A stretch of 64,000 nt of DNA from Diplonema japonicum (GCA_964019335.1 OZ025690.1:434001-498000); one strand, 5' to 3'; numbered from the stretch's first letter, positions 10,301-64,000 are shown. The notes: generated from the sequence alone by a model not told the origin. Numbers and translations: made by a program.

Positions 10301-10783
10301 GGCCTTGTGGGCAATCGTTTTTTTTTTTTTTCCCCTGATTAATTCTTGTTGCATCGGTTTTTTTTGTGCGCACGAGCGGTATTTTACCTAATAAAATAGC
10401 TCATTACGCTGCCATCAACTAGTTTTTTAGTCTCGACAATAATATTGTTAAAACAAAAAAATCTTTTTTGGTATAATTTTTTTTTTTTTAAATTCCACCT
10501 CCTCTTGGTCTAGCCAGACCGACCCCACCTGGGCTGTGTGGAGCCAAATAAGATAGATGGAAAGAAGGACAAAAAGAGCAGAGAAGGAGGGGCAAAAAAA
10601 AGAAAATAGCGACGCGTACTACCCAAACAATTAAAATGACTTCAAGTTACTTGCCTTTTTTATTATTATTTTAGCCCTAAGGGCGCAAAACTAATTTCAG
10701 GAAAGAAGGAGGGGGGGGGGGGGGGGGGGGGTGACTTTTCAAAATTCATTGTTCGATTCGATACATAGCTATCTTCCACGCCT

Positions 10784-21261: not shown

Positions 21262-24200
21262 TCACGAACGAGGCAGTGGGTGCATCTCAGTGCCAGGAGA
21301 ACTCGCAGGACTGTCACCCCCTTCCAAAGGGGAGTACGTCTTGCCCTTAAGGTAGCAGCAGAAAGACGCAGTGATCAAGAACAACAGCACAACTACCACG
21401 AACAGCACAACGAAGAGATACACAGGCGGGTCGTTAGATGATGATGGCGCGGCAGTGGTGGGGGTTGCAGTCGCCGGTGATGCTGTCGCTGCCACGGGCA
21501 CCTCAGGGTCGTTACCGAATGTAGGCAGCCCTTCTGAGCTGTTCCTAAGCCCCGTCCCCACGACGATCAGGTACGGCGGGCTGCTTGCTGCAAAGGCGCC
21601 GCTCTTGTCACGCAACGACTTCTCAACTTCTGCGTCGAGCACCTCCTCACAGCTGCCGTCCACAGTGAAGTCCACCATGGTTGCAGAGGTTGTGACCTGC
21701 AGCACCTCAGCACCAGGCGTCGTGTGCTTGCACGCAGACCACACAACACCGCCACTCACCTCAGGACAGTACCTCAGGACCTCCGGCATACCCCCACAGA
21801 TGCCCCCCAGCACCCCTTCAAACACAACAGACGAGAAGATGTCAGCAGAGATATTAACACGCAAGCGGTACCACACCCCCACAGGGGGGACCGCCGTGGA
21901 CGGTGACGCGGGCGCGGTTGTCACATTCGGTGTCGAGCCCACCGGTTGTGGGGTACGGGGTGGCGGGTTCGGCTGTGTAGTAGGCGTCGAGCCTGTGTCT
22001 GCATTAACATTGAAAGCAGCAACGGTGGCAGGCAGGTGGTCGATGCTGCACACGACAGACTCGTCGGCCACGCTGGTTGTGCGCGCGCCCTGCTGTTTCC
22101 ACCCTTCACTTGTGCTTGTGAGGCATCGCACGAATTCCCTGTCAGCCTCCTGACACGCGTCGCACTCCAACTCCACGCTGTACTTCACACCAGTGGCACC
22201 AGTAGCACTAGTACCGCGGACAGCCACAGCCCCCGTCACGGCTGCCTCGCTCCCTGTGAAGTACGACGACGAAGCGATCACAGTCACCTCTTCCGCAGAA
22301 CCTACTTCACGGAGGATGTTGACAGCACCCCCTAGCACGACAACCCTGCCCTCACCCCTTGTGGTGATGATGGCACCCGAACGTCTACCACCTTCGCCCA
22401 GAGGTGTCGTGTACTGCCCACCATTAGGCACCGCGGTGGCCACCTGCTGCAGGTAAGTAGACATCACAGCATCTAGCTGCAGGCTCAGTGCCGTGTTGTT
22501 GGCTGCTGCAGTGTCGATGAGCTCTTGCAGCTCTCGCAAGGTGCGCAGGACGTTGCTTTGCATCAACCTCAGATCCGACCCCGGCGTCCATGTGGGCAGC
22601 TTATCGACGAGCATCGAGCAGCACGCAGTGACCACCTGAGGCACGTCGACGGTGTGTCCCGCTCGTGCAAGGTTGGCACTGATCCCGCTCAGCTTCGAGA
22701 GTATGGAGCCAACAGTGTAAACAGTCAGCTGGGTGTTGGATGTGGTGATGCTGAGGATTGTCTGCAACAGCATGTCGGAACTGAGAGGGGTAGCACGGCG
22801 TCCCAAGACCAAGAAGACATCTAAGTTGCTAGTGGTTTCCTCATCTAGCACAGAGGCGCATAACTGGATATATTGCAGGCTGTTCGAGCCGCCTGCTTCC
22901 GTCGACGTGATAGAGTCGAAGCACCCGTCGATAAGGTCCTGCGCCTTGTCCTCCGTCTTCAGCACGAACACGTATGTGGAAGCCTCCCCTCTAAGACCTC
23001 TTGCGTCCTTGACTTCACCAATAATTTCCAAACCCTCGGGTGCCTCTGGTAGTATGATGTCTGTCGCTTGGCTGTCGTTCACGAAGCCGTTGGTGATGAC
23101 CTCCAGCTCACCAGGCAGGTAGGCCATGGTTGCTGGCCTCCTGTACGACAGGCGGTACTGGAATGGCGGCGTACCAGTGACCCCTCCGATTGTGAACGAC
23201 CAGGGTGAGGTGAGCGCCACCCCTACGTCTTCCTGCACGCAGCCCATCGACGACGACTCACACACGCCTACCACGGTGCCCACCACGGGAGGCATCTCGA
23301 CAACCACTGCTACCTCGCCGCAGCTTGGCTCGGCGCCTGTGTTCACGCACAACCGGAACACGTAAGTAACGCCTCCCTGAAGAACACCCGGCTTCACCCT
23401 CAGCACATCAGTCCCTGTGAGTGGAGTTTCGCACATGTCAGAAGTCACGTGGTTCGGAGCCGCTACATGCCACGAGTACCTGTTGTGGTTGTTGTTGTTT
23501 ATTAAACGGCCATACTGCTTGAAATCCACTGCTTTGCTCGCATGGCCCTGAAGCTGTGTGGCTTCTTTGCTGCTCTGCGGCACAGTCTGTTGATTTGTAT
23601 TTTCAAAAAAAGAGGGGAAATGGTGAAATGCAAACCTCATGGGAAACCGTGATAACAACCTGCCCCCCGGTCCTCTGATGAAACCTTTCAGCAATGAGGG
23701 ACTCGGGGTCAGCATGGGGGCAGAGGTAAAGCCCTGACAGGAGGAAGGTAGTCGACTGGTCTCCAAGAGAAAAGGCGGGTGTGGGGTTGGCAGTGCCAGT
23801 GTGCCCTTTGGTGGTGCAGGACGCATCGACGCAGAAGGTGACTGTCGTAGTGTCGGCCACCAGCGAGAGATAGTACCACGTGTCGAGGGTGACAGCTGCT
23901 GTGGTATGCTGCACGCCGTTCATGAGGAAGACAAAGTGCGACTCCTCGATGCTGATGCGGTACCCAGTGCTAGTGGTTGCGTCATGCTTTCCAACTACAT
24001 GGCAGGCTGTGCACCCTTCCATGTTTCTTACCCTCACCCACACCGACATTGTCATCACAGGCCACCAGAACGGGGCCCCTTCCGCCTTGAACACTCTCCC
24101 CACCACAAGGCTGTTCTCCTCATGCGTCACAGGCCCGCTCTCATAAGCAGTAAGCAGGTACGGTGATGGGTTGGTTGTGCCGGACTTCTTGAACATCTCG

Positions 24201-27200
24201 CCAACGGTGTGTGTTTCTAGGTTGTACAGATAGCAGGTTTCCTCTTCAGGTGCGTACCCTTCGTAGCTAAGGACACAGTCCCCTGTGCACGGCAAAGCAG
24301 TGCACTGCGGTGTGCAGAGGAACGCCGTCACGTTAACTAAGGTGGAGACCTCTAAGGTGACACCGTCGGCAAGGGGTGCTTGGAACTCTATGTAAGTAGC
24401 TGCAACAGACGTTATTGTTGCCTGTTTGCCATCTACGGTTACCTGCAGCTGCGTGTCTTGGCTGGTGGGGATGTTTACTCCCGTCGCCCTGACTACGTTG
24501 CCCCCTTTCCAGTTCACAACCCTAGGCGACAGGCCCACCAGGTATGGCGTCTTCACCTTGTCGTCGTATATATTGTTCAGCCTGGTGCTGTCCATGCCCT
24601 CCTCGCATAGCATCAGCTCCTCAAGTACGCCGCTCAAGTAGTCGTTGCCGGAGTTCCCTATTACAAGCTTGCCAGCGCCACCCCATGACAGCCCCACGTT
24701 CCTTATGGTAGATGCTTCCTTGCACTCCCTGTTCACGCAGACAGTCAGGACCGTGTGTGTGTCGACCACCTGTGTTTTGTTTTTATTTTTGTTTTTTGTT
24801 TCTTTCTTTTTTTTTTTTGAAGCTTCGAAGGAAAGAAATGTTGCCGTGACTTTTGGAGACATTTTATAAGCTCGTTGGTTGAGCGATAATTCTTCGGGAA
24901 ACGAATCCCCCGGTGTTGGGACACTTTAGAAGTTATAGACGTAAAAGTAGAAAAATTTAGAAGCAGAATCTTTTTGTGGGTTAGTTAGCATACCACGAAC
25001 GACATGGCTAGGAAGTGGAACTTGTTGTCGATGGATATCACGGGTCCATCCAGGCTGTACTCGCTTGTCTCGTCTATGCCCGCCATGCGCACGGTGGCTG
25101 TATGGTCCTGTCATGGATTACATAAGTATTGGCGTGAACATACCGCTCTACGTGTCAGTGTCACAGTGTACTGTGTAGGCCCCGCTGTCCTTCGAACCAG
25201 TGTTGTCACGCCGCCCTCTGCGGCGAGATTAGAGAAGGAGGGACTCGCTAGCTGCACCCATGTAGCAATGGTGTGGTTGCCGGTAAAGGCGAACTTATCG
25301 CTGTCAGAGGTGAGCAGTGTCGTCCCTGCGCTTCCTTTGAACACAAACCCGGCACCCTCGTCGGTGGTAGTGTAGCTGGTGCAACTGCAAGGTGTGAAGC
25401 TGCACACACACTCCGCCGCCAGTGTGGGTGATGACCCCTGGTCAGCAGCAACAAGAGACCTGTCGAATGTGTAATGGTGGCACAAGCCGCTCTGTTCCTC
25501 GATGCTTGCAGAACAGTCTAAGGTGTAAAAGCCAGTTTCACATGCACACTTTGCCACACCATTCACAAGGCTGCACTGTCCTCGACCACTGCAAGGCACC
25601 CCTGCAGCCACCCCAGGACATTCGAACTCACAGCTGTCACCTTTGTAGCCATCCTCGCATGTGCATGAGCCGCTACCCTCTCTTCCGTCGTTGCACGTAC
25701 CACGCGCGTTGCACACGAGGCCATTGTGCATTGGGCACTGGCTGCTGCACGACTCGTCGTAATACCCAGAGTTGCACATGCACATTCCGTCTCCACCTAG
25801 ACCGTCATTGCAGCTCCCGTGAACACATGGCCCACACTGGCTGCACCATGCACCAAAGAAGTCGTTGGCACATGACTCGCATAACGTACCTTGTCTCCCA
25901 ACTCCGCACACACACCCACCCGCCGTACAAGAACCCCTCCCGTTGCAGGGGTGCACCCACTTCACAGGCCCGATGATGACGAGCAGGTCGAAGTCTTTTG
26001 AAACACCAAAAGCATTGGTCACCTGCACCTTGAGTGTGAAGATCTGCGGGGAAAATCCAGCAGGAAGGAACCCTTGTGACTTCGGGTCGCTGATCCTCAC
26101 GTCGCCCGTGTAGCGGTCCACTGCAAAGAGGCGCTCTACGTTACCAGAAGACAGGGCCGTGGTGGAACTCAGAGCAAATGTAGTACCCGTGTTTCCATGC
26201 TCGTTTGGTGACCCGCATTGGTGCATGCAGAGCTGGGTTGATGCGTATGTTGGGTCACATGCTGGAAGCAGCGTGGTGGTGCTAGGCAGGTAGCAATACG
26301 TTGCGCACCAAGACACTGCTGTTGCAGTCAGCTCGCCAAGGGGCGTGAGAACCCATGCACACCCAGGTACGACGTCCTCGGGTAGGGTTACCCTCCCCAG
26401 CAACTCATGTCGGGACACCGGAAGTTCTACCGCAGGCAGCGTGGGTGTGAAGAACGCACCATGTGGCTCAGGAGAAGCTGCCTTGATGATGAGCTTCAGC
26501 GTGACAGAGTGTTGCAGAGATGGCCCGTAGACGGCAATGGCATCAAGCACGTATGTCCCTTCTACGGATGTTTCCTTCAGTACCATACTGCCCTCTGGAT
26601 CAATGAAGGCTGTCACTGTCTCGGTGCCACCTTCACGCAACAAGGCGACTTCCGTCACCCCGGTCACTTCTGTACCGTTTACAGCGATCTTTAGCGGCGT
26701 ACCATCATGAGCATATGTTCTGGAGAGGAGTCCCTTCCCAACAGGCACTCTGACCTCCTGCCCCAGTTCTGCCCCAATCACGACTTCGTCAACACCTGTC
26801 ATTACACGCTCCGCAGCTATAGTGTGCACAGTAAGGTCTGCAAACCTCGCATTCACAGCATCGTACGACATGATAGCCACCTTAGAGGGTGCGCCCAGTG
26901 CCTCGACAGCACTGCTAACCACCTGTAGACCATCCACGTGCACCACAACGTTGCTTCCGTTGACCCATACCCGCACATGGGTCGACGTGCCGCGTGGTGT
27001 AGCGTCTACCTCCCCGAGCCACGTGTAGGCACCGCCTCTGCCCATCATCATTTCCTCCCACAAAGCCTCACTCGCTATCTCTCCTTTTACCCTGCCCACC
27101 ATCACTCTGCGTGATGCACTGATGGTGACCAGTAGGCAGTCCACTCTTCCGTCGCGCACTTCCTTTGGCCATGATATTCCTGCTGCCAGTCCCACGTACC

Positions 27201-30200
27201 CCTGCTTGGGGATACCCAGGGCCACCTGGGCGATCAGTGGCATGCTGTATGTGTCAGCAGTGATATGGAAGATAGGTGACATGGCAGACTCGAGCACCGC
27301 CACAGGGCCCGCCAAAATGGTACCGACAGCACACGGCTCGCTGCAAGTTCCTGCAGGTCCCATAGTTTGTGTGCTGACGAAATGTTGTGTGGGAGCGAGA
27401 GGCTGGTGATTTGTGAGGATAGGTGTCGCGGGTTTGCTGCATATCCACCTCTTGGGAGTGCTGCAAGGGAGGTCTACCCACGGCTTGCTGCTATCGACCG
27501 TTTGATACTGCATGGCCGCGCACCTGCCGTACCGAGCTGGTCTTCCCGTGTGCCAGTTCGTGTAGATTGGCACAACACCGTCTGACCATGTCCATGCGTC
27601 CCAGACCCCCGATGGCAGTGACAGCATTGTCCATATGTCATCCTTCAGCAGCCCAGCCAAGAAGTCTGCCACATCAGGGGACTTAACTTCAACAAGTGTG
27701 GCGCTCATGAGTTCGCAGCTGAGCTTCGCCTCCTCCCATGGCCTTTCCATGCTGCTCTCTTTGTAGCACGTGTCACTAAAAAGATGCCAGTCGTCACCAC
27801 AAGAGTATTCCGGTCTGCACCCTACTTCACAAGCAGGACCTTCCCACCCGTTTGAGCACAGACATTTCCCGTCGCCGTCGCATGTCCCATGCCCATTGCA
27901 AACTCCGTTCGCAGTGTTGCCAGGACACACGTGTTCGCAAGAGCTGCCCACGTAGCCTGTCACGCAAGCACACGTGCCACGTGTCGATTCGTCACACGCC
28001 CCGTGCCCGTTACAAGGCCTCTGCAGACCACCGGGACATATCATGTTGCATTCCGGGTAATTATACCTCCCAAAGGAGCAACGCTCACAAGCAGTCCCCA
28101 CGTTGTACAGGTTACACTGGCAGCCTTCAGACGTGCACACACCACGTCCCGTGCACTCCTGGGGGCCCGTGCTTTTGACAGTGAGCTCGTACGAGTACTC
28201 CTCGCCAGTGCACGCACAGCCTGGTGGCTGGTTGCATTGCAGTGTGGTAGCAAGGCAGGAATCTCCGCAAGGGTTGGTGTTCAGACACACCACGCAGCAC
28301 GAGCGCGTATAAGGCTGAGTAACAGGACAAATCTCAGTGCAATAATCACCTGAGAACGAGTCGCTGCATATGCACTTGCCCGTCCCTTCAGAACCGTCGT
28401 CACATACGCCACGGTTGTTGCAGATGGCATCCGGCCAACCAGGACACCTGCCCCCGCAGCCAGGTCCGAAGGTGCCTTTTGGGCAATCGCAAACCCCAAC
28501 CTCAGGAGTGACCTCGTTGTGCTTGCAACGCAATGGGTCTCCGCAAGGTGCTTCGGGATCGAATGCAAGAGGGTCGGTCACAACATCAGATGGAAGCTGA
28601 GCGGCGTCACCGCCATTAGTGCGTGTTATTACATCGCCGTAGAAGTATGCCGTGAAGATGGAGGGGATGGTCTGCCCTGTCATGGTGGGCAGCGCACATT
28701 TCCTCTCGCACCCCGTCTCGAGTACCCATCCCTGCGAAGTCTTGCACACATCACACTGCATCCCTGACCACCCATAGCTGCATGAACACGTGCAGTACCC
28801 ACCAACCACTGCGGAAGCCCCACGGTTGTTGCAGAAGTTTGCAGTGCATTGGCAGTTGTGCTCAACGCCAACATTGTCAGGAGTGTCTGCGGCGCATTGT
28901 GTGCAGTTACCATTGTACCCAGCAGGGCAGATGCCACACGGCGCACTACCACTTGACGGTCCCCAGTAGCCATCGCAAGCACAACTAGTGCACGCACTGC
29001 TTGGTCCGTATGTAGCACATGTTCCATGTCCTGAACAAGGTGTGCAATCAGGGTAATCAAAGTACCCCTGATTGCACATGTCACAAGACGTGCCTGTGAA
29101 TTGCGACAGGCATGTGTCGCACAACACGCCTTGCCACTGGTTGTCGCATTCGCATGCGCAGTTAGGCCCCGAGACTCCATTGGCGCACTCAGGGCACTTC
29201 ATGCAACCAGTGTTCATGTCGCCCGTCCACCCAACACTGCAAACAGCGCAGTCGAGCTCCGCATCAAACCCTGATGTGCACACACTACAGTCAACGCCAG
29301 TCCACATTGCCCTGCACACACAGCCGCACGAAGACTCATCTGAAGCAAATGATGAAGCAGCATGGCCACTGCAGTGCACAACAATGTCACATGCCACACA
29401 ATTAGGGTAGCCAACGTGCTCCACCGCACACCCTGTGCACGTCGTGTTGAAGACCGAGGGGCAAGTACTGCAGTCGTCGCCCGTCCAGTGCTGGAGGCAG
29501 GTGCAAACGCATGCTGACATGTCCACATTGCTGGTGACACCCAGCGCATTGCCACTGCAATGCTCATCTATGGTGCACTTCGCGCAATCGCTGCCATAAT
29601 GGCCTGCAGCGCATGCGTCACAATTCGTCCCAGAGAACTGCGGGGGGCACAACTCACATTTATTTCCCGTCCAGTTATTTTCACAGCTTGAACAGGTACA
29701 CGTGCTTGAGCTTCTGCAAGGCATGTTGCTAGAGTAGCACTGCGAAGCAGAGACGTTCCACGTGCACGAAGTGTGAGCAGACGCAGTCCAAGTGCCTTGC
29801 GAGGTGAGAACCTCGCCACACGTACCACACTCGCTCGAAGAGCAGCTATTCACATCGCCAGGATACCCGCTGATGGCGGTCCCTCTGCCGTTACAGTGGT
29901 CGTCGTTGGTGCACACCTCGCACCTTGGGTAGTTGTTCAGCGTGTACACCTCCTGCACAGGGTCCCATCCCGAGTTGCATGCATCACAGTCGGCACCCGA
30001 GAAGGTCGCGGGGCAGCTCTCGCAGCGGCTACCTGTCCAGCTGTTACGGCAGGTGCACAAGCACTGTCCTCGTACTGAGCTTACGGAAGTTGCTCTCCCA
30101 AGACAGTCAATACTGATCGAGCATGGTCTGCAATTCTCCCCCACGTGGCCTGGCATGCAGTCCCTGCAGTTCGAAGCCTCATCATAGTTCGAAGGACACA

Positions 30201-33200
30201 CACTGCAATCGGTACCCGACCATTGGTTACTACATTCACACACACAAGTCGTTTTGTGAAGATCTGCTGCAACAGACGTTGCATGGCTGCTGCAGTGCGT
30301 GGTGATGTCGCATGCAACGCACAGTGGGTAGCCTATCCTGCCAGAGGCACAGCTACTACATTTATCGTTGACTTGTGCGAATTTCTCAGGACACAGGGAG
30401 CAATCGGAACCCGTCCACTGATCCATGCAAACCTCGCAGAGGCAGCCATTTGCATCACTAGACACCACCAATGCATTCCCCGAGCAGTGGACATCATTGC
30501 GGCACGGCTCGCAGAAGATACCGTGGTACCCAGGAGAACATGCGCTGCAATTCTGCCCTGTGAAGTGTGGTTTGCACTCCTCGCAAGTAGGTCCTTCGTA
30601 GTTGTTGTAGCATTCACACGAGCAGTGTGTCTGTTGTGCATCGATGACGTGTGCCCCACCTACACAAGATGTGTCGCATTGAGTGCAGTTCGGGTAGTTC
30701 ACCAGACCTGGAGCGCAAGAGCTACAGGTGACTTGGTCATAGGCCACGGGGCACACAGAACAATCAGAGCCTGACCACTGGTCCTGGCACGCGCACACAC
30801 ACTGCGTGTAGGTCGGGTCAGATACTACCACCGAGGCATGTCCTGAACACGAAGTGGTAACGTCACACTTTCGGCAGATGTACCCCTCCACGCTCAAGTA
30901 ACGCTCGTAGCCCCCGGCACACCTGTCACAGTCATCACCTGCCATACTGTCAGGACACGATTCACATGCCAAACCACTCCAGAAATTGCGGCACATGCAC
31001 ATGCACCCAAGTCCAAAGAAATCAGGCAAAGTCTGTCTAGCATGCCCATTGCAGTGCTGCTCAGATGAACACAGATCACAATTCAGACCCACGTGGCCAA
31101 AGGCGCAAGTCGAACAGTCACTCATCATGTTGTAGTTGAGTGGACACTGGGAGCAGCTAGGACCTTCCCAGTGGTTTCTGCATGCACAGGAACACGTCGT
31201 CTGTGACACGTCAGGCACAGCTGCCGTGGCGTGGTTAGAGCAGTGCTGGGCCACACTGCACGGCATGCATGATGGGTATCCGATGTGGCCTGTGGAGCAG
31301 CGGTCGCATGCAACGCCGGTAAAGCCAGCACTGCACAGGCACTGGCATGCCGTTTGGGCGGCATTGGTAACTACGAGGTCGGCATGGTTATTGCAGTACA
31401 CGTCGTTGCTGCATTCTATGCAAGAGGGGTAAGCTATTCTGGCAGCTGCGCAAGAAGAACAGTCTTCCGCGAACACCGACGGGCACAGTGAGCACTGTGG
31501 TCCCATCCATTGCTCCCGGCAGGCACACTCGCACGTCGCATCAGTACGGCTGTAGCATATAGCGCTAGAAGGTGCCCCTGCAGATGCTTTCCCTCGCAGC
31601 GCAGCAGCATTGGTGCAGCCCGTCCTTATCCAGCCCACCGCATCAGGTGGTGTGCTGCTTGTGGTATACAGAGCACACCACCCAAGAGGCCCTATCCCAT
31701 AACCCACGCACCATCCACCACTGCAAAGTTTTTTGCAAGATGTTTCAGTCACGTTCATTTTGTACCACCCAGCTGTGCACCCGTCACTGCCCCAGCACAT
31801 CCCGAGCCCCACGGCTTTGAAACCCGCCACAAGCTGTACACTCACACTGTTGGCGTTTGATGAGCAGTCCGTTTCAGTGCTGCACAAACTGCAGCTGCCG
31901 TCAGATAACTGCACATAAGGACTCAGACATGCAGCACACTCCACACCGCCGTATGGTAGTGGACAGAATGAACAGTCACTGCCTGTCCAGCGGTTCGCAC
32001 ATGTGCACACGCACCTCCCTCCCTCAAACACTACACTGCCATGATTGTTACAGTGACTAGTTGTGCAGTTACCGCAGTTAGGGAAGACGTCCTCCAGCAG
32101 AGTACAACCGCCACACCCGAGCAGGCCTTCGGTCTCATTGAATTCGGGTGGGCACACATCGCAGCCAGAGCCCGTCCAGCCATTAGCACACCCGACGCAT
32201 GTGCAACCGTCTTGGGTGGGGTTCGTGACAACCGAATTCGCCCGCCCGCTGCAGTGTATATCCACATCACAGGCCGTGCACGTAGGATAGTTGTACCTTC
32301 CCACTGCACACTGATTGCAGGATGTGCCATAATGTGACGGGCAGATAGAGCAATCAGGGGCATCCCATTGCCCGCTGCATGTACACGAGCATACGCCGTT
32401 CACCGCAGCAACAACACCATTTCCCGAACAGTCTTGTTGTTCATTGCACAGCCTACAGCTGGGTCCCACTCGCCCGCTGGCACAGTGCAAACATGTTGTG
32501 TTCTCGTACTGAGCACCACACACGCTGCAATCAGGACCTTCCCAGTTGTTAGCGCATGTGCACACGCATGCATCACGGAGGCTGTTTGACATCACTAATA
32601 AAGCGTGCCCACTGCAATGCACATCGACTTCGCAGGCAAGACAATCGGGGTAATTGATGTGCCCTGCTGCACAGGTGTCGCAGTTTTCTCCTTCATACTG
32701 TCCAGGGCAGACGGAACACGACAGGCCGGTCCAGGGATACTTACAGGCGCACATGCATTTCGTGTGCTCCGCATCAGAGGTGACGCTCGTGGCATGCCCG
32801 CCGCAGTGCTGAGCATTATTGCACTTCTGGCATGTGGGGAATGAAATATACTCATCAGCACATTGGTCACACAGAGTGCCAGCGAAAGGCACTTGGCACG
32901 TGCACGTGCATGTTGCTCTATCAGGCGAACTACTGATAACAGCAGAGCCGGCACCACATTGTGTGACACAGCTCTCGCAAGAAGGCAGCACATATCCAGA
33001 AGCGCATGTTGCGCACCCGCTTGAAGCATCGTACTGCTCGGGGCACACGTCACAAACACTTCCTTGCCAGAAATCTTTGCACACACATGTGCACTGACCC
33101 ACAGCGACGACAGCAGATGCAGCACCCACACCACAGGAACTAATATCGCACGCAACGCACGCAGGCGCTTCACCATAGTACTGCTCTGCACACCCAGTGC

Positions 33201-54200: not shown

Positions 54201-57200
54201 CTGCAAAGGTGGCCGCACAAGAGGAACAGTTGGATCCCGCCCACCTTGTCGTGCAGGAACACAAGCACTCGGTGCCCCCAGAGCCCACAGTCGCAGTCAC
54301 AGCCCTCCCGTTGCAGGAGGCATCTACACTGCACACCTTGCACTCCGGATAGTCGAACCTCCCAACAGCACACTCCCTGCACCCAGACCCAAGGGAGTAC
54401 TCCTCAGGGCACACCTCGCAGTGCAAACCGGTCCAACTGTCCACGCAAGCCCCGCAGCTGCAAGCATTGTTGTTCCCAGTCACCTGCGCCCCAGAGAGCA
54501 GGCGGCCGTTGCAGTGGTCATCGTTCGTGCAAGCCGAACACATCGGATAGCCAGACCCGAAGCCCACACCGCACGCCCCGCAGTCAGCTGAGGCATCGAA
54601 GCGCCCAGGGCAGACAGAGCAGTCGGGACCGCCCCATTGGTTTCGGCAGCTGCAAGAACAGGTCGTCCCGTCGCTCGTCACCCCGGTTGCGTGCCCAGAG
54701 CAGTCACCGCTCGTCGTGCACTGCCGGCACTCGGGGTGGTTCGTCCTCCCGTTCGCACACGTCCCGCAATCCAGAGAGGAGTTGAAGCGTCCCTCGCACA
54801 CAGAACAGTCGTCCCCACTCCACATTGCACGACAGGTGCATGAACACCCGTTGATCTGCACCGCGTGCCCGCTGCAGTGCGTCTCTGTAGTGCACTCCGC
54901 ACAAGCAGGGTATCCGGTGTAGCCGAAAGAACAAGCCCCACAGTCTTTTGCAGGGTCGTACCGAACAGGGCACTCGTCGCACCGCACACCTTCCCAGAAC
55001 CCGGGGGCATCACAGCTGCACACGCACACCCTGCTCCCTCCCCTCACCTCGATACCTGCCGAGGAGGCCCGACCGTTGCACTGGGCCGTCGTGCAAGGCT
55101 CGCAGGTAGGGTAGTTGTCCAAGCTTGTGGGGGCACACTCGCTGCAGTTCGATCCCGTGAACCTCGAAGGACACGTCCCGCAGTTCGTCCCGGTCCACTG
55201 GTGCCAGCACTCGCACTCGCAGGTGCTCCCGTCGCTCTTTGCAACTGAGTTCCCGTGGTTGCTGCAGTCTCCCTGCACACACTTTCGACACCCACCGGTC
55301 CCGTCCCTCGCGTACCCGGCGTCGCTGTCGCACTGCTCACACTGCGGTCCCTTGTAGCCAGGGTTGCAAGCGCACACACAAGGCTGTCCGCCTCCCACAG
55401 AATTGACAGAGGAAGCGCGGTTGCTGCAGTGAACCACGATGCTGCACCTGGAGCACGAGGGGCCCGCGTAGTTAGGAGCACAGGCCGAACAATCCGACGA
55501 AGAGAGGTACTTGCTGGGGCAGGACTCGCAGGTGGAGCCGCTCCAGTTGTTCCGGCACTCGTGGCAGACGCAACCGGTCTGGTCACTGTTCGGGCCAACA
55601 ACCGTGGCGTGACCGTTGCAGTGGGTTTGCGAAGTGCATTCCTCACACGAATCTACAGCTTGCGGAGCGGCATTGACATAACAATATGCAGCATAATGCA
55701 AGTGGGAATCTGAAGGGTATGTTCGCGTTCTCTGTCTGCTGGAGTGCTGCCATGCAAGAGGGTAGAATCTGCACCATTTGTGAACAGTGCGCCAGTAGCA
55801 GCATCCTTCCTGACCCATCGACTCGCAGCACTGTTGGCACTCGTAGGCATTCGAAGCGGCGGGACATCTCACGTATCGCAAAGCAGGCTGGCACGTGCGG
55901 GAGCTCATGAAGCCGTCACAGACAGCAACCTCTGATGACTGTTTTGCTGACGCAGCGGCGAAAGGTATAACCTGTGTACTACTACAGTCCTTGGGACCAG
56001 AGATCCTATCTTCCTTTGGTTCCAAGTATGTTGACCCTTCATCGCCGTTCTTGAGGTAGCACTTCTTTGTCGAGACCTTCCACGTCCAGAACTGACATCG
56101 ACTGTTTGCCTTGCAGTACGTAAGACAGTGCAACGCTGAAGTTGCTGTCTTCTTTCCAATGGCATTATCGTAGCCGCGTGCGACGTAGATTGCATTCCTG
56201 TACATGCAGCTGCATGCCTTGCACTCTGGATAGGCGTCTCCTATATACGATTTGGCGTAGTTTGGGGCCTCTCCCTGTCCCACGAGGTCAGTGATGAGAG
56301 ATCCACATGTCGTTTTCTGATAAGCAAGGGTGTTCCACGTGGGGCTATCTACACCACACGGGTCTGGAGTGCATGCACCACATTTCCACGCCTGCTGAGT
56401 TGCAGCCATGGTGCGTGCTTCGTACTCAGATAAACCATTCGCAATGTACGTAGATATCATCGACCCACACGTTGAAGAACCCACGGCCACGTCCCACACA
56501 TCGCTACAGGGGTCGGGACAGTCAACACGTACGGCGTGTAAACTAAAGGCACTGTCGCCGTCTTGGTCTGCAGCACCGAATACCAGCTTAATGTGCGTAA
56601 CACTGTTGTACTTCCTTCCAAACGCGTGTCTAGTGAAAATACCGAAACGGAACATAGGTGCCATCTCACGATACGTAGTATAAATGTGCGCCCCATAAGC
56701 ATCTCTGCGGGCATCGTAAGTGCCATACATGAGCTCGCTGTTGTAAGCAAGCAGCCACGTCCTGCCCCTGTCTGTGGACACATAGGCACGGATGCCTGAG
56801 TACCCTGTGGACACGGTCTCTTTGTTTACTAAAATAGACACGGAGCCCACATCATGTGACCCATGCAAGTCCAACGACATACTGTACTCAGATGAGTTCG
56901 CAGTACGGTACCTAATCCAGTTGATGCCGCCGTTTAAGGCGTCATTCACAATGCCACGCGCGGAGAACTTGTCGCGGTTGACGCTCTTGTCGGCACTGTG
57001 GATGGTGCCTGTGAGGTCTTTCAAGAAACATGTGCCTGGTGCGAATTCCGGCTCCCACTTGTTGATGGGATTGAGCACAATGCTATCGAAGGTAACTGCT
57101 GCGCCACGCGGCGTGAAAGTCAAACGCATGTGCCTTACATTTTGTCCATCTTGTAAATTGTGCACAAAAGACTCTGCGTTGCCTGCTGTGCTGGGGAAAA

Positions 57201-60200
57201 AGCTGCCGACCATTTGGAAGGCTTCATTCCAAGCAATGCCATCTGACGAAACAGTGATAACTAAGCCAGCGTAGCCACCAAGGGGGTCACTCACTGAGAC
57301 CGACACGCTGCGGATGTCCTGCTCACCAACCTGGAGCACCACTGTGACGGTGGCACTGGTGCTCTGTATTGTGATCGGGTTCTGGTCCCCATTCAGTACA
57401 GGAGACAGGTCGGTGAGCAGCATGACATTTCCTGCAGAAGCATAACCACTCACGAAAGGCACTGACGGTAGACCGCAACAACTGTGGTACTCACCATTGT
57501 CACCAGGGCAGCAGTTCCCTTCTATATTTGTACACTGCGGGTGCGCAGCACATTGTTCGTTTGTAAACTCTTGTGAAGCGTACCCACTAGCGCACAGGTT
57601 GCACTCTTCGCCCGACCATCCCTCTTTACACTCGCACACACATCTGCCAGCGGAGTAAATAACCGAATGAGCATTCCCGCTGCAGTGTTGCTGCAGACCG
57701 CAAGGTATGCACCGTGGATAGTCAACATAGCCGGTTGCGCATTCATCGCAATCACTTCCTGCAATGTTGTAGGGACAAGCCTTGCAGTCGGGAAGCGACC
57801 ATTGGTTGCGACACTCACAGAAGCACTCGCTCTGGTCAAGATCCAGTCGGGCCTCGTTGGCATGTCCAGCACAAGACGTCTCGACGGTACAGTAGCTACA
57901 GGTTGGAAAACCGTAGCGCCACTTGCCACACTTTGTGCAGCTATCGCTGTATTGCGGTGGACACACCTCGCAAGTGTCACCTGTCCACAACCCCACGCAT
58001 GTGCACTTGCATGTTCCCGTGCGCGACGTTTCTTGCACATTAACAAAACCGTTGTTTAAACACACGCATTCACGGCAGGTGGGGGGATCCACCCTGCCGT
58101 CTGCACACTCGTTGCAATTGCCTCCCTGACGGTACTGCAAATCGCATGTGTCGCACTTTTTACCTCGCCAGAAGTTGTTGCATGCACACAAGCACTCTTC
58201 CTGATTGCTTGTCACACTGTCAGCATGGCCGGAACAGTGCTCAGCCACCAAACATTCACCGCACGCTGGGTACCCGAAGCGCGATGCAGCGCACTCGTTG
58301 CAGTTGGTACCACTGAAACTGCTGGGACAGGTTTGGCATTGCTGACCAATCCATTGGTTGAAGCAGTTGTTGCAGATGCATGTGTCCCTAGCGGCGTTAG
58401 ATGTCACATCCGCTTGGGGAGAGCGCCCTTGGCAGTGAATGGCAGCCTCGCACTTCACACACTCGGCAGCAACAGAGACGTAGCCTTCCATGCACACAGC
58501 GCAGTCATGAGCAGTACTGTAGCCATACGGGCACAAGTTGCATGTTTGGCCATGCCAATGGTTCCTACATGAGCAAACGCAGGCACCGTTAACAGCGTTT
58601 GCCTGGCCATGTTCGGTGCAGTCGGCACTCGTGCACTGCCTGCATGTGGGGTAGTAGGCGTATTGTGCTGCGCACCTGTCGCACGTTGACTGGTCGTACT
58701 TCTCTTGGCAACTATCGCACCGCGCTCCGGTCCATTTTTTGTTGCAGTTGCAAACACACGACACCCTATCTAACGTAGATGAGTAAGGCACCCCGTGATC
58801 ACCACAGTCAATAGCGTTGCACTGCCTGCAGTGTGGTGCCACACCTACGTAGCTGTCACTGCATTTCTTGCAGTCCTCATCTACGTCAATGCCAGTGGGG
58901 CACACAGCACAGGCAGCCCCCGTCCACGAGTTGCGACAAGAGCAAAGACACGTGTCCTTGAGTACATTACTAGTCACAGACAGTGCATTGCCCGTGCAGT
59001 GTTCTTGGGTGTTGCATTTCGTGCACAACGGGAATCCGATGTGGCCTTCTGCGCAAGTGCTGCACGTTGCTTGGTCATACTTCACAGGACACACCGAGCA
59101 CGTTGGTCCCTCCCACTTTGCTGCGCATGTACAAGTGCAGGTGTTGCCATCCGTAGACCCAACGTCCATTGCGTGGTCGCTGCAGTGTGTGCTGAAAGAG
59201 CACTGCTCGCACCCCGCAGCATAATTAATCCAATTATCGAGGCATCTATCGCAAAGTGCTCCAGTAAAAGGAAACGGGCATGTTTGGCACGCAGCGCCGA
59301 CCCATTGGTTGTCACATGTGCAGACACACTTGCTGTGGTCAGAATTGGACATTGTTGTTAATGCGTGGTTGCTGCAGCTTTCCTCCACTGTGCAGCGCGT
59401 GCACTCAGGGTAGTTGATATAGCCGAGCTGGCATTCCCCACAGTCCCGTGCAGGGTCGTAGACGGGAGGGCACACATTGCACTGTAGGCCCGTCCAGCTG
59501 TTGCGGCATGCACAGTGACAAGTAGTGTTGTCAAGACTCTGCACACTTGATGCGTGGTTGCTGCAGTGCGTTTGGACCTGGCACGGTATGCAGTCAGGGT
59601 ACATGATGTGGTTAGCTGCGCACTTGTTGCAGAAGCTCCCTGCAAACTTAGGCAAGCAAGTGCACCTGCACTCAGAACCAAGACTACTAACTACACTAGA
59701 TGCATGCCCATTGCAATGCACAGCTGAGGAACACGGCTCGCAGTTCGGTATGTTATGATTGGCCGCACATATGTCACATGCCGTACCGCCATACTGCTGG
59801 GGACACGTCTCGCAGCTGTCACCCGTCCAGTGCCCCGTACAAGAGCATTCACACGCTTGGCCGTCGTATGATGTTGCGCTCGACGCGTGCCCACTGCAGT
59901 GCTCTGCAACGGTGCACCGCAAGCATCCCTGGTTGTATTTAATAAATCCGGTGGCACATGCGTCGCAATCCAGCCCCCCAAATTCGGGGGTGCATTGATT
60001 GCACTTCAAGCCTGTCCATGAGTTTCTACACGTGCAAACACATGCTGTGTGCAGATTGTTCGAGTACACAGCAGTAGCGTGTCCTGAGCAGTGTGCGTCC
60101 GTATCGCATTTGCCACATTCAGGGAACACGACAGCCGCGTACCCAGGGGCACACGTCCCACAGTCATGTGCCTCGTCGAACTTTGGTGGACATGTTGCAC

Positions 60201-63200
60201 AAGAAGTCGCCTCGCTCCATTGATTGCGACATTCACACAGACAGCGCTGCTGATCAGAGCTCGCCTGGACAGCCATCGCTTTGTTGTTGCAGTGCCTGCC
60301 CACATCACATAATGTACACGTAGGGTACGAGATGCGATTGGCACTGCAAGCACCGCAATCAGAATGTGCATCGTAAATACTAGGGCAGATATCACAATTA
60401 GGGCCCGTCCAGTGGTTCCTGCAGAAGCACACACAAGATACTTCGTCTATTGCAGTTACATTATGAGCATGATCTGAGCAGTGCAGAGAAACGCTGCATT
60501 TGTAGCAAGTGGGATACGAGACATGTCCAACCGCACATGAAGCACAGCTATTCTCTTCGTAAATAGGACTGCAGTGGTCACAAGAGGCACCCGCCCACTC
60601 CCCAGCGCAATCGCACACACACATGTCGAGCTCAGACGTCACAGCCACAGCTCGTCCATTGCAGTGCTTTGCTGTGGTGCACTGCTCGCAAGTAGGGCCC
60701 ACGTACCCCGTGGCACAAGTCGCACACGTCAGTTGATTGTACTGTACAGGACATAAGTTGCAAGTGTCACCAGTCCAGTGGACGGCACAGCTGCAGGTGC
60801 ACAAGGTATTATTGCCGTTGGAAGTCACTGTGCGTGCATGACCCGAGCAGTAGGCATCGTTGGTACATTTTCGACATGCCGGGTAGTTGATGTGCCCAAC
60901 AGCGCACTGATTGCACTTCTTACCTGTGAAACCAGTATTGCACCCTTCTTCCGGGGGCGTTTCAGGTAAGCTCTTGCCATCGCAAAGTGGACGCGCCACG
61001 TACGTGACAAGGGGCGCTCTGGTACAGATGTAACTATCGAATTCCGTGTTAATGACGCCATTGCCTGCAACAGAGACAAACTGGCACGTGTGCCAATCGT
61101 CGCCGTTCTTTTTCCACGACGTGCCTGAACACCCATATGTTTCCTCACACATCTTGCGGCACTCATCTGCAGAGGAGGCAGGGCGTGGCACTTCTTTGTA
61201 CATGCTCTGGGACCTCCAGTCCAGCGACTGCTGGATAGCTTTGTTCGACAGTATCGACCATGTGCATGGGGCAATGGGTCGCTTGCAAACCATACTGCTG
61301 AAGAGGCCTGAAGCCACACCCCGTCCTACTTTCGCGACGAAGAAGCACTTGTGGTACTGCGGGTGAGACGGGTCGTCTTTACGCCATGAGAAACCTATGC
61401 AGTCCTCCATCCCTTCGCACAAGATTTGACACTCTGCAAATGTCGCAGCATCGCTATGCAAGGCATACGACGAGTCTTCAGCAAGACTGTCGTAGTCCTT
61501 CATCAGTGCTGTGTTGTCCATCACCACCCAGTCACAGGCAATGTTTAGTGTGCTCCCCTCACATGCACAACTATGTTTCACTCCATTTTCGTCTTTCGCA
61601 CAGTGCTCGTTGTTACTACACGTATTAAGGAAATTACATGTTACGCCAGATGGCTCCCTGCAAGACTGTTTACTTAGCAAGCACTCAGGTACTTCACCAG
61701 GTGGTGTCATACACAAGCATTCCGACTTATCAGCACTTGGCCTTGCACTGTGAGCATTGCTGTTGCAATGGTCCAGGTCACAAATCGTGCAGTTGTTCCC
61801 TGCAAAGTCTTTTTTGCAAGTACCACAGTCCAATTGCGGATCAAAGCCATGCCGGCAGACACTACACTTATCACCCTCCCACTTGTTCCTGCACGTACAC
61901 GTACACTGCGTGCTGTTCGGTTCCGATCCGACAGCTGAGGCATGCCCGCTGCAGTGGGTGTCGAGGGAGCACGGAAGACACAGCCCGCCCACCTCGACGA
62001 AGCCAGCCGCGCACACCGGGGAGATCCCGCTGCAGTCGTAGTTCGGGGGACAGATCCCACAGGCCGATCCCGTCCAAGGTACCTTGCACACACAGACGCA
62101 CTCATCGTTCGCAACGTATTCATCGCTGGAGTGCCCGTTGCACGCGGCCCCGTCGCACAACTTGTCGCACACGGGCCACCCGTGCAAGCCCTCGCTGCAC
62201 CCGTCGCACTCGTCTCCGCCATACTGCGAGGGACACACGTCGCACCCCTCCCCAGTCCACTGGTTCGAGCATCCACTCGAGTTGCACACACAACGCTGCT
62301 GCCCAGCATCCGTAGACACGAGAACAGCCCGTCCAGAACAGTCCGCACCGTTGTCACAGGCCCGACACCCAGCCTCGCTCTGCACCGAGATGTGAAGGGA
62401 AGAACACCCATCGCAGGTAGGCCCGTTTTCCTCGAAGCGGGTTGGGCAGGTCTCGCATTGAGAACCCTCCCACCTCCCGGTACAGGTGCAAACACACTGC
62501 GAGTGGGTCTCGTCAGAGGTCACAGAGGAGGCGTGGCCTGAGCAATCCCCTCCCACAGTGCAAGCCCTGCAGCTCGCTCCTTCCCACACGTGTCCAACAG
62601 AGCAGGTTGCACAGTTCGGGGGAGAGTAGGCCGCAGGACACCCACAGTCGCAGCCTGTTTGGGTCGCGTTCGCCGAAGAGCTCCCGCGCCCGCTGCAGTG
62701 TCCGACAGAGGTGCACGGGACACAGGCCTCGCCGACAGAGATGTGGTTCGAAGCACAACCGTCGCAAGTGGGTCCTGCAAAGGTGGCCGCACAAGAGGAA
62801 CAGTTGGATCCCGCCCACCTTGTCGTGCAGGAACACAAGCACTCGGTGCCCCCAGAGCCCACAGTCGCAGTCACAGCCCTCCCGTTGCAGGAGGCATCTA
62901 CACTGCACACCTTGCACTCCGGATAGTCGAACCTCCCAACAGCACACTCCCTGCACCCAGACCCAAGGGAGTACTCCTCAGGGCACACCTCGCAGTGCAA
63001 ACCGGTCCAACTGTCCACGCAAGCCCCGCAGCTGCAAGCATTGTTGTTCCCAGTCACCTGCGCCCCAGAGAGCAGGCGGCCGTTGCAGTGGTCATCGTTC
63101 GTGCAAGCCGAACACATCGGATAGCCAGACCCGAAGCCCACACCGCACGCCCCGCAGTCAGCTGAGGCATCGAAGCGCCCAGGGCAGACAGAGCAGTCGG

Positions 63201-63999
63201 GACCGCCCCATTGGTTTCGGCAGCTGCAAGAACAGGTCGTCCCGTCGCTCGTCACCCCGGTTGCGTGCCCAGAGCAGTCACCGCTCGTCGTGCACTGCCG
63301 GCACTCGGGGTGGTTCGTCCTCCCGTTCGCACACGTCCCGCAATCCAGAGAGGAGTTGAAGCGTCCCTCGCACACAGAACAGTCGTCCCCACTCCACATT
63401 GCACGACAGGTGCATGAACACCCGTTGATCTGCACCGCGTGCCCGCTGCAGTGCGTCTCTGTAGTGCACTCCGCACAAGCAGGGTATCCGGTGTAGCCGA
63501 AAGAACAAGCCCCACAGTCTTTTGCAGGGTCGTACCGAACAGGGCACTCGTCGCACCGCACACCTTCCCAGAACCCGGGGGCATCACAGCTGCACACGCA
63601 CACCCTGCTCCCTCCCCTCACCTCGATACCTGCCGAGGAGGCCCGACCGTTGCACTGGGCCGTCGTGCAAGGCTCGCAGGTAGGGTAGTTGTCCAAGCTT
63701 GTGGGGGCACACTCGCTGCAGTTCGATCCCGTGAACCTCGAAGGACACGTCCCGCAGTTCGTCCCGGTCCACTGGTGCCAGCACTCGCACTCGCAGGTGC
63801 TCCCGTCGCTCTTTGCAACTGAGTTCCCGTGGTTGCTGCAGTCTCCCTGCACACACTTTCGACACCCACCGGTCCCGTCCCTCGCGTACCCGGCGTCGCT
63901 GTCGCACTGCTCACAAAGCCTCCCTTTAAAGCCAGCTGCACAAGTGCAAACACACAATGTCTTTTGACTATTCGATGTCACCCACGTTGCCTCACCTAT
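21262..63999 (-). CDS. Giant Cys-rich single-pass surface protein, at least about 14,130 aa, 5'-truncated by the window. Exons 63999-25144, 25107-24994, 24769-23636, 23586-23516, 23479-21262
   Basis: The frame is open to the window edge (IGEATWVTSNS...), so GTG 63981 is not the start. Four GT-AG introns join the pieces in frame and restore continuous LamG (NKFHFLAMSFV|VVDTHTVLTVCVN) and REJ-like (VDFKQ|YSWHV) domains. The protein ends in a TM helix, VYLFVVLFVVVVLLFLITASFCCYL (about 21349-21423), and a 28-aa tail. Confidence 0.88.
22012..22125 (-). other. Degenerate GPS motif (end of a GAIN-like domain) in the giant protein
   Basis: CLTSTSEGWKQQGARTTSVADESVVCSIDHLPATVAAF follows the C...W...G(C)......C.C.HL(T/S).FA pattern, with Pro in place of the T/S nucleophile. 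Confidence 0.6.
22960..23586 (-). other. REJ/PKD-like domain of the giant protein
   Basis: YSW....; LRVKPGVLQGGVTYVFRLCV; VVVEMPPVVGTV; GVALTSPWSFT; PPFQYRLSY; IILP; VKDARG, as in REJ modules of the polycystin-1 family. Confidence 0.7.
23480..23515 (-). other. Intron 4 (36 nt, phase 2, in frame, no stop codon)
   Basis: GTATGGCCGTTTAATAAACAACAACAACCACAACAG. Removing it deletes a low-complexity 12-residue GRLINNNNHN-containing stretch and gives FKQYSW. Confidence 0.7.
23587..23635 (-). other. Intron 3 (49 nt, phase 0)
   Basis: GTTTGC...AATCAACAG, AT-rich, resolves the frame change between ORFs 23603..24862 and 21262..23826 (VSHE|TVPQ). Confidence 0.85.
23680..24235 (-). other. Second LamG/ConA-like domain of the giant protein
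   Basis: MTMSVWVRV...VVGK......GYRISI.....VF......LDTWYYLSLV.D...VTFCVD. Confidence 0.7.
24323..24547 (-). other. IPT/TIG domain of the giant protein
   Basis: PYLVGLSPRVVNWKGGNVVRATGVNI......VTVDGKQATITSVAATYIEFQAP. Confidence 0.8.
24770..24993 (-). other. Intron 2 (224 nt, phase 0)
   Basis: Donor GTATGC, in-frame TAA at +7, A-rich 3' end ...AAAACAAAACACAG. Confidence 0.85.
25108..25143 (-). other. Intron 1 (36 nt, phase 0)
   Basis: GTATGTTCACGCCAATACTTATGTAATCCATGACAG contains the TGA that ends the 12,956-aa ORF. The downstream 114-nt exon (DHTATVRMAG...FHFLAMSFV) is open in frame. Confidence 0.85.
25970..26440 (-). other. Cadherin-like domain of the giant protein
   Basis: FALSS......LFAVDRYTGDVRI.........FTLKVQVTNAFG.......LVII; a weaker copy at about 26480-26780 (FIDPEGSMVL...GTYVLDAIA). 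Confidence 0.6.
27439..27801 (-). other. C-type lectin domain of the giant protein
   Basis: CGDDWHLFSDTCY......WEEAKLSC....ATLVEVKS...IW....WTWSDG....YTNW..GRP....RCAAM......WVDLPCS....WIC. Confidence 0.9.
38195..49192. repeat. Near-perfect tandem repeat, period 4467 bp (1489 codons), about 2.46 units, inside the giant exon
   Basis: Identical ORF-track translations recur at +4467 and +8934. Boundaries were checked at 38195/42662 and 44725/49192. One difference seen: T at 40173 and 44640 versus C at 49107. Confidence 0.95.
51062..51861. repeat. 800-bp cassette C, also at 44855-45654 and 40388-41187
   Basis: Identical translations at offsets 6207 and 10674; ends checked by eye. Confidence 0.9.
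53305..55632. repeat. 2328-bp copy of cassettes A+B, matching 47116-49443
   Basis: Offset 6189 bp (2063 codons); identical translations. Confidence 0.92.
55680..56207 (-). other. Two PAN/apple-like domains in the giant protein
   Basis: ATSALHCLTYCKANSRCQFWTWKVSTKKCYLK...RISGPKDC and AYECQQCCES....GCCYW.....WCRFY. Confidence 0.75.
56525..57440 (-). other. Two galactose-binding-like (F5/8 type C / discoidin-like) beta-sandwich domains
   Basis: Cys-poor insert with L.L.....I/V.SV.I/V, then I.VS.DG..W (ITVSSDGIAW, AYVSTDRGRTW), then VRHMRL/VTHIKL patterns. Confidence 0.6.
61026..61540 (-). other. Tandem pair of PAN/apple-like domains in the giant protein
   Basis: AECQILCEGMEDCIGFSW.......KCFFV and DECRKMCEETYGCSGTSW......TCQFV. 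Confidence 0.75.
61883..63915. repeat. 2033-bp copy of cassette A (fifth copy in the window)
   Basis: Offset 8574 bp (2858 codons) from 53309-55341; identical translations. Confidence 0.92.
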
Positions 64000-64000
64000 G

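Follow-up and report, generated by a model that had tools for sequence, protein, structure and literature searches.

A predicted giant minus-strand gene and its proposed exons

The window analysed here, a 64,000-nucleotide stretch of the Diplonema japonicum genome (G000:C43:434001-498000), contains part of a minus-strand gene that, in our model, encodes a single-pass surface protein of about 21,400 amino acids (aa). Its largest visible piece is an open reading frame (ORF) of 12,956 aa (25111..63981, minus strand), which is still open at base 63999, the window edge. The original prediction held that this ORF is incomplete, being one part of a spliced gene that runs through several ORFs and ends in one transmembrane (TM) helix, and this description stands. 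Once 40 kb of flanking contig was included (coordinates beyond 64,000 refer to this extended window), the frame proved to be open up to 84441, with a stop-to-stop length of 19,776 aa in the ORF search. Extending the contig had been proposed as a way to find the signal peptide and did lead, past a 32-nt intron, to a 466-aa first exon with a signal-peptide-like Met start. This exon starts with MGPGGVVMLLLGCALA (MGPGGVVMLLLGCALARLEG) and has an in-frame stop upstream, with an A-rich tract ending in CAG directly before it. The tract in front of the start codon resembles the intron 3' ends described below and may be a spliced-leader acceptor.

Towards the 3' end, the giant frame would be joined to three further exons. 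The four junctions proposed originally (25143..25108, 24993..24770, 23635..23587 and 23515..23480) all have GT..AG ends and restore the frame, and the resulting exons of 38, 378 and 774 aa (762 aa with the fourth intron removed) agree with the sizes given before. We treat the fourth intron as optional because the candidate lies in frame and contains no stop; homolog lengths across this stretch, counted by eye in the relatives, do not settle its status. The exact donor of intron 3 is also uncertain, as an alternative GT 15 nt upstream preserves the frame too. The full model comes to 466+19,749+38+378+774 = 21,405 aa, or 21,393 aa if the 12 codons of the fourth intron are spliced out, and summed exon by exon it amounts to 2.25 MDa with 2,708 Cys. 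The earlier figure of at least 14,130 aa thus holds as a minimum but underestimates the predicted protein.

That splicing joins the gene is inferred on the basis of a shared intron consensus, a LamG domain divided between exons, a paralog, the transcript of a relative and signs of selection. All five introns have GT(A/T)TG..ACAG ends, measure 32-224 nt and restore the frame, and their GC content is 33-41% compared with 56-59% in the exons. In 65 kb of sense strand, a stricter pattern (GTATG[TCG], 18-60 nt, [AC]ACAG) has just three occurrences, of which one is coding sequence and another would disrupt the frame. The GTATG..ACAG candidate at 77723..77682, within the giant exon, was rejected as an intron: it encodes the EGF motif CMCEDGYKGDMC. 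At their 3' ends the introns are rich in A/C (..AACAACCACAACAG), not in pyrimidines, and the lengths fall between 32 and 49 nt except for one of 224.

Every protein search and fold prediction was done exon by exon, and the per-exon profile matches distribute LamG domain 1 over three exons. A small LamG profile aligns by its N-terminal part (positions 31-46) with the tail of the giant exon, at E 0.05, and by its C-terminal part (positions 113-160) with the head of the 378-aa exon, at E 4e-4; per-exon Pfam searches gave no match for the 38-aa exon or for the head of the 378-aa exon. The paralog on contig C74, described below, has introns of the same style. Its LamG 2 and REJ-like region lie within one unbroken ORF at the site of intron 3, and it carries an intron where the last exon of the C43 gene runs on uninterrupted. 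Among 1.84 billion cluster representatives, phmmer found only two relatives of the last exon. The best of them (E 2e-31) is P0001, a Trinity transcript from Hemistasia phaeocysticola, itself a diplonemid; it encodes LamG, REJ-like, GPS-like, linker and TM parts in one protein.

Moreover, contigs from a related strain show 19 synonymous and 17 non-synonymous differences; of these 36, 19 fall at third codon positions, and none introduces a stop. The locus was found in six public sequence runs. Five, whose kind is not recorded, contain the stretch in full; those that were aligned extend across the introns and are therefore genomic contigs. A contig end at 24769 was considered as a splice site and discarded as an artefact, the repeat 24770-24823 being skipped in the alignment and DNA contigs being cut there too.

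Head, stalk and membrane-proximal base

The predicted protein can be divided into a distal head, a very long stalk and a base that reaches the membrane (Table 1). The stalk is built from a unit with ten near-invariant Cys that follows the pattern CxCxCxNxWxGxxCxxCPxxYxxxDCxxCAxGxxxYPxCxxCxxxxHCSGHA. A hidden Markov model of this unit (hmmsearch, i-E<1e-3) finds 243 copies, 223 of them nearly full length, which together cover 13,809 residues; identity among most units is just 35-45%. Three units modelled with AlphaFold2 (AF2) reached a predicted local distance difference test score (pLDDT) of 94.7, and in this model the unit has a laminin-type EGF-like fold. Its best Foldseek matches are the laminin-EGF-like (LE) modules of netrin, perlecan and laminin (E 8e-5, probability 0.98, with a TM-score of only 0.2-0.27). 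Compared with PDB sequences, the stalk profile has a weak link to laminin beta-1 LE (E 0.013), and Pfam EGF_laminin scores 18.1 bits, below its cut-off of 21.

The stalk is interrupted by a PAN/apple island and a low-Cys island. Pfam searches with long pieces overlooked the PAN and lectin domains, both of which were detected with short pieces. Parts of the stalk are nearly identical to one another: besides the tandem duplications in Table 1, a 2-kb GC-rich block (~62% GC) is present in the giant exon in five in-frame copies of at least 99.85% identity, at 38195, 42662, 47129, 53318 and 61892. All duplicated copies in the giant exon keep the frame, and these blocks look like recent duplication or gene conversion within one exon. 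The full blocks range from 38195 to 63915, and a 340-bp partial copy lies past the window (G000:C43:503546-503885). The stretch 45655-53304 is diverged although its flanks are identical.

At the distal end, the VWA domain satisfies its profile, and the DxSxS motif of a metal-ion-dependent adhesion site (MIDAS) is present as LDRSGS. By eye, the final segment of the first exon, CRRKWEWQSCRVGDCCAGNTRCYEYNRWYAQCKRSC (84423-84560; L006:723-860, minus strand), resembles the cellulose-binding module CBM1 of fungal type (N-x-W-Y-x-Q-C); Pfam reported no CBM1 there at E 0.01.

Below the stalk, the domains follow in the order EGFs, C-type lectin, a segment of ~500 aa, EGFs, LamG, IPT/TIG, LamG, REJ-like, GAIN-like, Pro/Thr linkers and TM. 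Most of the domain order first proposed is recovered here, with EGF_2 and EGF_Teneurin above their cut-offs and with TIG (21.5-22 bits) and Laminin_G_3 (33.3 bits) in the 378-aa exon. The proposed ConA-like domain was not detected, and for the cadherin-like domain there is a language-model lead only: the nearest Atlas clusters of the low-Cys segment (507 aa) are bacterial Ig/cadherin-like, at 0.90. The same segment has no Pfam match, and a PDB sequence search with it returned nothing useful. The C-type lectin is clear at the profile level, and its canonical sugar-Ca motifs, EPN/QPD and WND, here read RPA and WVD by eye. Canonical sugar binding by this domain is therefore doubtful.

The REJ-like and GPS/GAIN-like parts named by the original prediction are both traceable in the last exon. 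Pfam REJ (PF02010) reaches 24.8 bits, just short of its cut-off of 25, with ~180 aa rather than 600 matched (profile positions 240-417 of 452), and 21.6 bits on the C74 paralog. In the phmmer search, the last exon is linked at E 1e-3 to the Picomonas fragment P0002, on which REJ scores 113.5 bits. The structures matching this region are tandem FN3 domains (Z ~9), and the REJ module is FN3-like in nature (PMC3677617), which agrees with our two-sandwich model.

For the region that follows, a GAIN fold is probable, judging from the predicted model. Its top Foldseek match is the GAIN domain of BAI3 (E 5e-7), and structure comparison aligns it with at least six GAIN structures (Z 8.1-10.1), including CELSR1 (Z 10.1, 218 residues aligned), BAI3 (9.8, 241), Gpr126 (8.9), latrophilin-1 (8.8) and latrophilin-3 (8.1). 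Every chain that spans the helical as well as the beta half is a GAIN domain from one of the adhesion G protein-coupled receptors (GPCRs); the CD97 GAIN domain (Z 9.5) covers the beta half alone. The top match of Pfam GPS falls at the expected place, with 13.9 bits against a cut-off of 22.5, and a PDB sequence search with the last-exon alignment gave nothing useful. The GPS site reads CSIDHL-P, without the T/S/C nucleophile, and is not conserved in two relatives, which read AAAL-P and QGGD-Y; autoproteolysis is thus unlikely.

Between the GAIN-like domain and the membrane lies a small module with 3-4 Cys that may be SEA-like, according to a low-confidence model. Outside the last exon, no 19-aa stretch in the 19,749 aa of the giant exon has a mean hydropathy above 2.2. 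Pfam searches gave no match to PLAT or PKD_channel, and there is one hydrophobic helix only, with no 11-TM or 7-TM block.

Table 1. Elements of the proposed gene and of the predicted protein; coordinates are those of the window, extended beyond 64,000 where flanking contig was added.
Feature	Coordinates	Strand	Description
Whole gene	G000:C43:455262-519820	-	~64.6 kb; proposed cis-spliced unit
First exon	85820..84423	-	466 aa; Met start, signal-peptide-like
5' intron	84422..84391	-	32 nt, GTATGT..TACAG; joins first exon to giant exon
Giant exon	84390..25144 extended (G000:C43:459144-518390); window part 25144..64000	-	59,247 nt = 19,749 codons, no stop
Intron 1	25108..25143	-	36 nt, GTATGT..GACAG, 39% GC; takes out stop 25113..25111
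38-aa exon	24994..25107	-	Open frame; middle strands of LamG domain 1
Intron 2	24770..24993	-	224 nt, GTATGC..CACAG, 34% GC, low complexity
378-aa exon	23636..24769	-	LamG 1 C-terminal strands aa 4-55, IPT/TIG aa 75-147, LamG 2 aa 239-337
Intron 3	23587..23635	-	49 nt, GTTTGC..AACAG, 33% GC
Optional fourth intron	23480..23515	-	36 nt, in frame, GTATGG..AACAG, without stop
Last exon	21265..23586	-	774 aa (762 if fourth intron removed); then TGA TAA at 21264..21259
Head	distal, after the signal peptide	-	Gly_rich_2 31.5 bits, DUF4215 29 bits, VWA 50.2 bits (Pfam)
Stalk	giant-exon aa 2258-18552; window part 28735..64000	-	~243 units of 63 aa, 10 Cys each
PAN/apple island in stalk	60982..61560	-	PAN_4 30.3 bits, PAN_1 28.5 bits
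Low-Cys island in stalk	55837..57549	-	PAN_1 33.3 bits; F5_F8_type_C (discoidin-like) 18.5 bits, cut-off 28.2
Recent in-frame duplications	38195..49192	-	4,467-bp unit, 2.46 copies, 99.985% identity (blastn self-comparison)
C-type lectin-like domain	27433..27744	-	Lectin_C 49.7 bits, E 7e-13
Low-Cys segment between lectin and EGFs	25870..27390	-	~500 aa; formerly read as ConA-like plus cadherin-like
End of giant exon	25144..25473	-	Last EGF (EGF_2) and N-terminal strands of LamG domain 1
REJ-like region	22951..23574	-	aa 5-212 of last exon; modelled as two FN3/Ig-like beta sandwiches
GAIN-like domain	22006..22950	-	Eight helices aa 213-385, beta subdomain aa 406-526, end ..VVCSIDHL/PATVAAF
Juxtamembrane beta-alpha-beta-alpha module	21547..21876	-	aa 571-680; Pro/Thr-rich linkers either side; kept in Hemistasia and C74 relatives
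TM helix	21352..21423	-	aa 722-745; mean Kyte-Doolittle 3.2 over 19 aa
Cytoplasmic tail	21265..21351	-	29 aa

Genomic setting, paralogs and known systems

All genes adjoining the giant gene lie on the same strand, and unidirectional gene arrays are the Diplonema arrangement (PMC10161547). Between 4002 and 20126, all large ORFs that look coding lie on the minus strand; by eye, the intron-less ORFs at 4002-5429 and 8963-10354 (both minus) resemble an ammonium transporter and a metal transporter of the NRAMP type. The euglenozoan host assumed by the original prediction is borne out by the spliced leader, as the 3' part of the kinetoplastid/diplonemid form is found at 232 places in the genome and the control at 0. 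The dinoflagellate/perkinsid spliced leader was searched for in the genome and is absent. The genomic copies read ..CCAACGATTCTAAAGCTACAGTTTCTGTACTTTATTG, which we take to be the diplonemid form. These 3' parts are scattered over most contigs, often near contig ends (e.g. L011:1490-1519 and L012:1483-1519), and do not occur in tandem arrays alone. Retrotransposons of the CRE clade target spliced-leader genes.

The giant gene belongs to a family. The 63-aa stalk unit occurs in at least 11 large frames of the genome, with lengths of 19,776, 11,559, 8,600 and 4,123 aa, four of 2,132-2,251 aa and three of 1,055-1,211 aa. The C74 paralog (G000:C74:334352-366656, plus strand; L014-L017, L009) has an 11,559-aa frame with 14% Cys and the same unit, and then exons for LamG, IPT, LamG, REJ-like and GPS-like/TM parts; its introns are partly at other places than those of the C43 gene. 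The C9 member (G000:C9:26599-53166, minus strand; L018-L021) combines an 8,600-aa frame with a 255-aa TM exon. Its head carries pentraxin, C-type lectin and LamG_3 (69.7 bits), and it is without the REJ-like base, which in this genome is found in the C43 and C74 genes only. Heads and bases seem to be interchangeable on a common type of stalk. Outside the genome, a search limited to proteins of ~100-330 aa found the stalk-unit profile in three fragments, from ENA and JGI records. Our literature search on giant proteins in diplonemids returned nothing relevant.

Among described proteins, the base is closest to the single-pass SpREJ1, which it resembles more than polycystin-1. It had been assumed that C-type lectin, REJ and GAIN/GPS parts normally sit on multi-pass membrane domains; the combination is not confined to these, since SpREJ1, 8 and 9 join REJ to EGF and C-type lectin domains in proteins with a single membrane pass (PMC1934368). 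The layout of SpREJ1 is EGF, C-type lectins, REJ and one TM (PMC2120838, PMC1934368), and the giant protein likewise has EGF and C-type lectin domains and one C-terminal TM, together with a REJ-like module whose score is borderline. However, SpREJ1 is an animal protein with a 5.6-kb cDNA, a 210-kDa glycoprotein, whereas the euglenozoan protein is more than 10 times as long and adds a 16,000-aa laminin-EGF-like stalk, the VWA/Gly-rich head, LamG and IPT; its REJ match, moreover, is confined to the C-terminal half of the Pfam profile. The likeness to polycystin-1 (PKD1) stressed by the original prediction applies to the ectodomain only, namely the C-type lectin and an FN3-type, REJ-like region followed by a GAIN/GPS-like part next to the membrane (PMC3677617, PMC9672506). 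Polycystin-1 proper has a PLAT/LH2 domain after TM1 and 11 TM helices, the last six channel-like, and the giant protein does not belong to it, having neither; it also lacks PKD repeats and LRR/WSC, and its GPS (HL-P) has no nucleophile.

The stalk is closest in predicted fold to the LE rods of laminin, netrin and perlecan, which are likewise rigid, disulfide-rich and formed by a tandem module. LE modules have about 50-60 aa and 8 Cys, whereas the unit described here has 63 aa with 10 Cys, stays below the EGF_laminin cut-off and is repeated ~243 times, compared with a handful to ~20 in laminins. With the GAIN domains of the adhesion GPCRs BAI3, CELSR1, latrophilin, Gpr126 and CD97, the base as modelled shares a helical and then a beta subdomain and a GPS-like strand before the membrane linker. 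It differs from them in having no 7-TM block and no significant sequence similarity, and in being probably uncleaved.

As for size, PKZILLA-1 has 45,212 aa and 4.7 MDa, and PKZILLA-2 has 3.2 MDa (10.1101/2024.01.29.577497). Like titin and these proteins, the giant protein would be multi-megadalton, made of repeated modules and missed by standard annotation (10.1101/2024.01.29.577497). It is smaller than all three, however, and is of a surface adhesion type, neither a sarcomere ruler nor an enzyme line; in addition, nearly all of it is encoded in one 59-kb exon.

Reach, function and alternatives

We think it probable that the locus holds one cis-spliced gene within a unidirectional array, and that its product is a type-I membrane glycoprotein of ~21,400 aa serving as a long-reach adhesive tether or coat fibre. 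In such a molecule, a signal peptide would be followed by a distal binding head with the Gly-rich domain, DUF4215 and the VWA domain with its MIDAS. The head would be carried by ~243 laminin-EGF-like modules that form a disulfide-locked rod, interspersed with PAN and discoidin-like islands, and the lectin-type and VWA binding sites would be held as far as about half a micrometre from the cell. Laminin LE rods extend by ~2.5 nm per module, and on this basis the rod would measure roughly 0.6 µm; the reach of hundreds of nm suggested originally is therefore plausible. The REJ/GAIN-like base may bear the load at the membrane, with the mucin-like linkers, the single TM and the 29-aa tail as the anchor. 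Given the short tail and the HL-P sequence at the GPS, any signalling would require a partner protein. Taken together, the observation behind the original prediction is confirmed and its interpretation is partly supported, and a role in adhesion, prey capture or mechanosensing may be read from the architecture.

Several points weigh against this view. What is shown are the open frame, the domains, the fold of the repeat and the paralogs, whereas splicing, expression, surface location, length and function are deduced, the last of them from domain types. The signal peptide was called only by eye and from hydropathy, and the continuity of the LamG domain over introns 1 and 2 depends on per-exon matches that are weak (E 0.05 and 4e-4, from a search of three sequences). 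The sixth public run is guessed to be RNA of a relative, and its short contigs span no junction. Both REJ and GPS fall under their Pfam cut-offs. The GAIN match comes from a low-confidence AF2 model of the last exon (mean pLDDT 48), whose helical half alone is matched as well by generic helical repeat proteins (Z 11.4 in a wide search). Finally, an assembly error could account for the number of copies of those blocks that share 99.85-99.985% identity.

Another reading is that of a silent or decaying locus, or of a size inflated by mis-assembly of near-identical repeat blocks, for which the identity of the blocks could be invoked. A 59-kb stop-free frame, however, cannot persist without selection; the duplications are all in frame, and synonymous differences are in excess relative to the related strain. 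Moreover, most units are only 35-45% identical, so that the bulk of the length is independent of recent copies, and independent public contigs are identical over the 3' part. We regard this explanation as very unlikely. It is also quite unlikely that the locus comprises several genes, with the giant frame ending at 25113..25111 as a secreted, unanchored protein and the downstream ORFs expressed as separate trans-spliced mRNAs. Euglenozoa do resolve polycistrons by spliced-leader trans-splicing, the 419-aa and 854-aa ORFs both start with ATG, and the runs found gave no spliced read. But LamG domain 1 would then fall into three pieces, the ATG of the 419-aa ORF lies within a poly-A, low-complexity tract, and a frame-restoring GT(A/T)TG..ACAG pair is present at every ORF break. 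Furthermore, the C74 paralog and the Hemistasia transcript are unbroken over the junction between LamG 2 and the REJ-like region.

A different function for the same protein would be that of a mechanosensor in the style of polycystin or adhesion GPCRs, in which a pull on the stalk strains or exposes the GAIN-like domain and the signal passes through a separate channel or receptor subunit. Here the GAIN-like fold matches, and the combination of C-type lectin, EGF, REJ-like and GAIN-like parts with one TM is the layout of SpREJ1 (PMC2120838, PMC1934368), which is thought to act like this in the acrosome reaction of sea-urchin sperm. We nevertheless consider it unlikely, as the HL-P site and its lack of conservation in two relatives make autoproteolysis improbable, PLAT and a multi-pass domain are missing, the tail has only 29 aa, and no partner protein is known.

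Returning to the adhesive tether, it is tempting to speculate, doubtful as the idea is, that diplonemids assemble hundreds of laminin-EGF-like modules into micrometre-scale, disulfide-locked 'fishing-line' receptors whose uncleaved REJ-GAIN anchor reports load to a separate partner. If this were true, it would mean that the force-bearing REJ-GAIN anchor of polycystins and adhesion GPCRs exists outside animals and their close relatives, joined to a stalk of record length in a single 59-kb exon, within a family whose heads are interchangeable.

The giant protein is a variant on known modular surface proteins, remarkable mainly for its scale and its host. If expressed, it would be among the largest proteins predicted in any eukaryote, below titin and the PKZILLAs, and a surface protein. 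On genomes of this kind, standard gene calling splits giant genes into several ORFs and overlooks their small exons. The long-stalked family, with its lectin, VWA, PAN and pentraxin-type heads, provides candidates for adhesion or prey contact, and the presence of a REJ-like plus GAIN-like unit in Euglenozoa bears on the age of the ectodomain module shared by polycystins and adhesion GPCRs.

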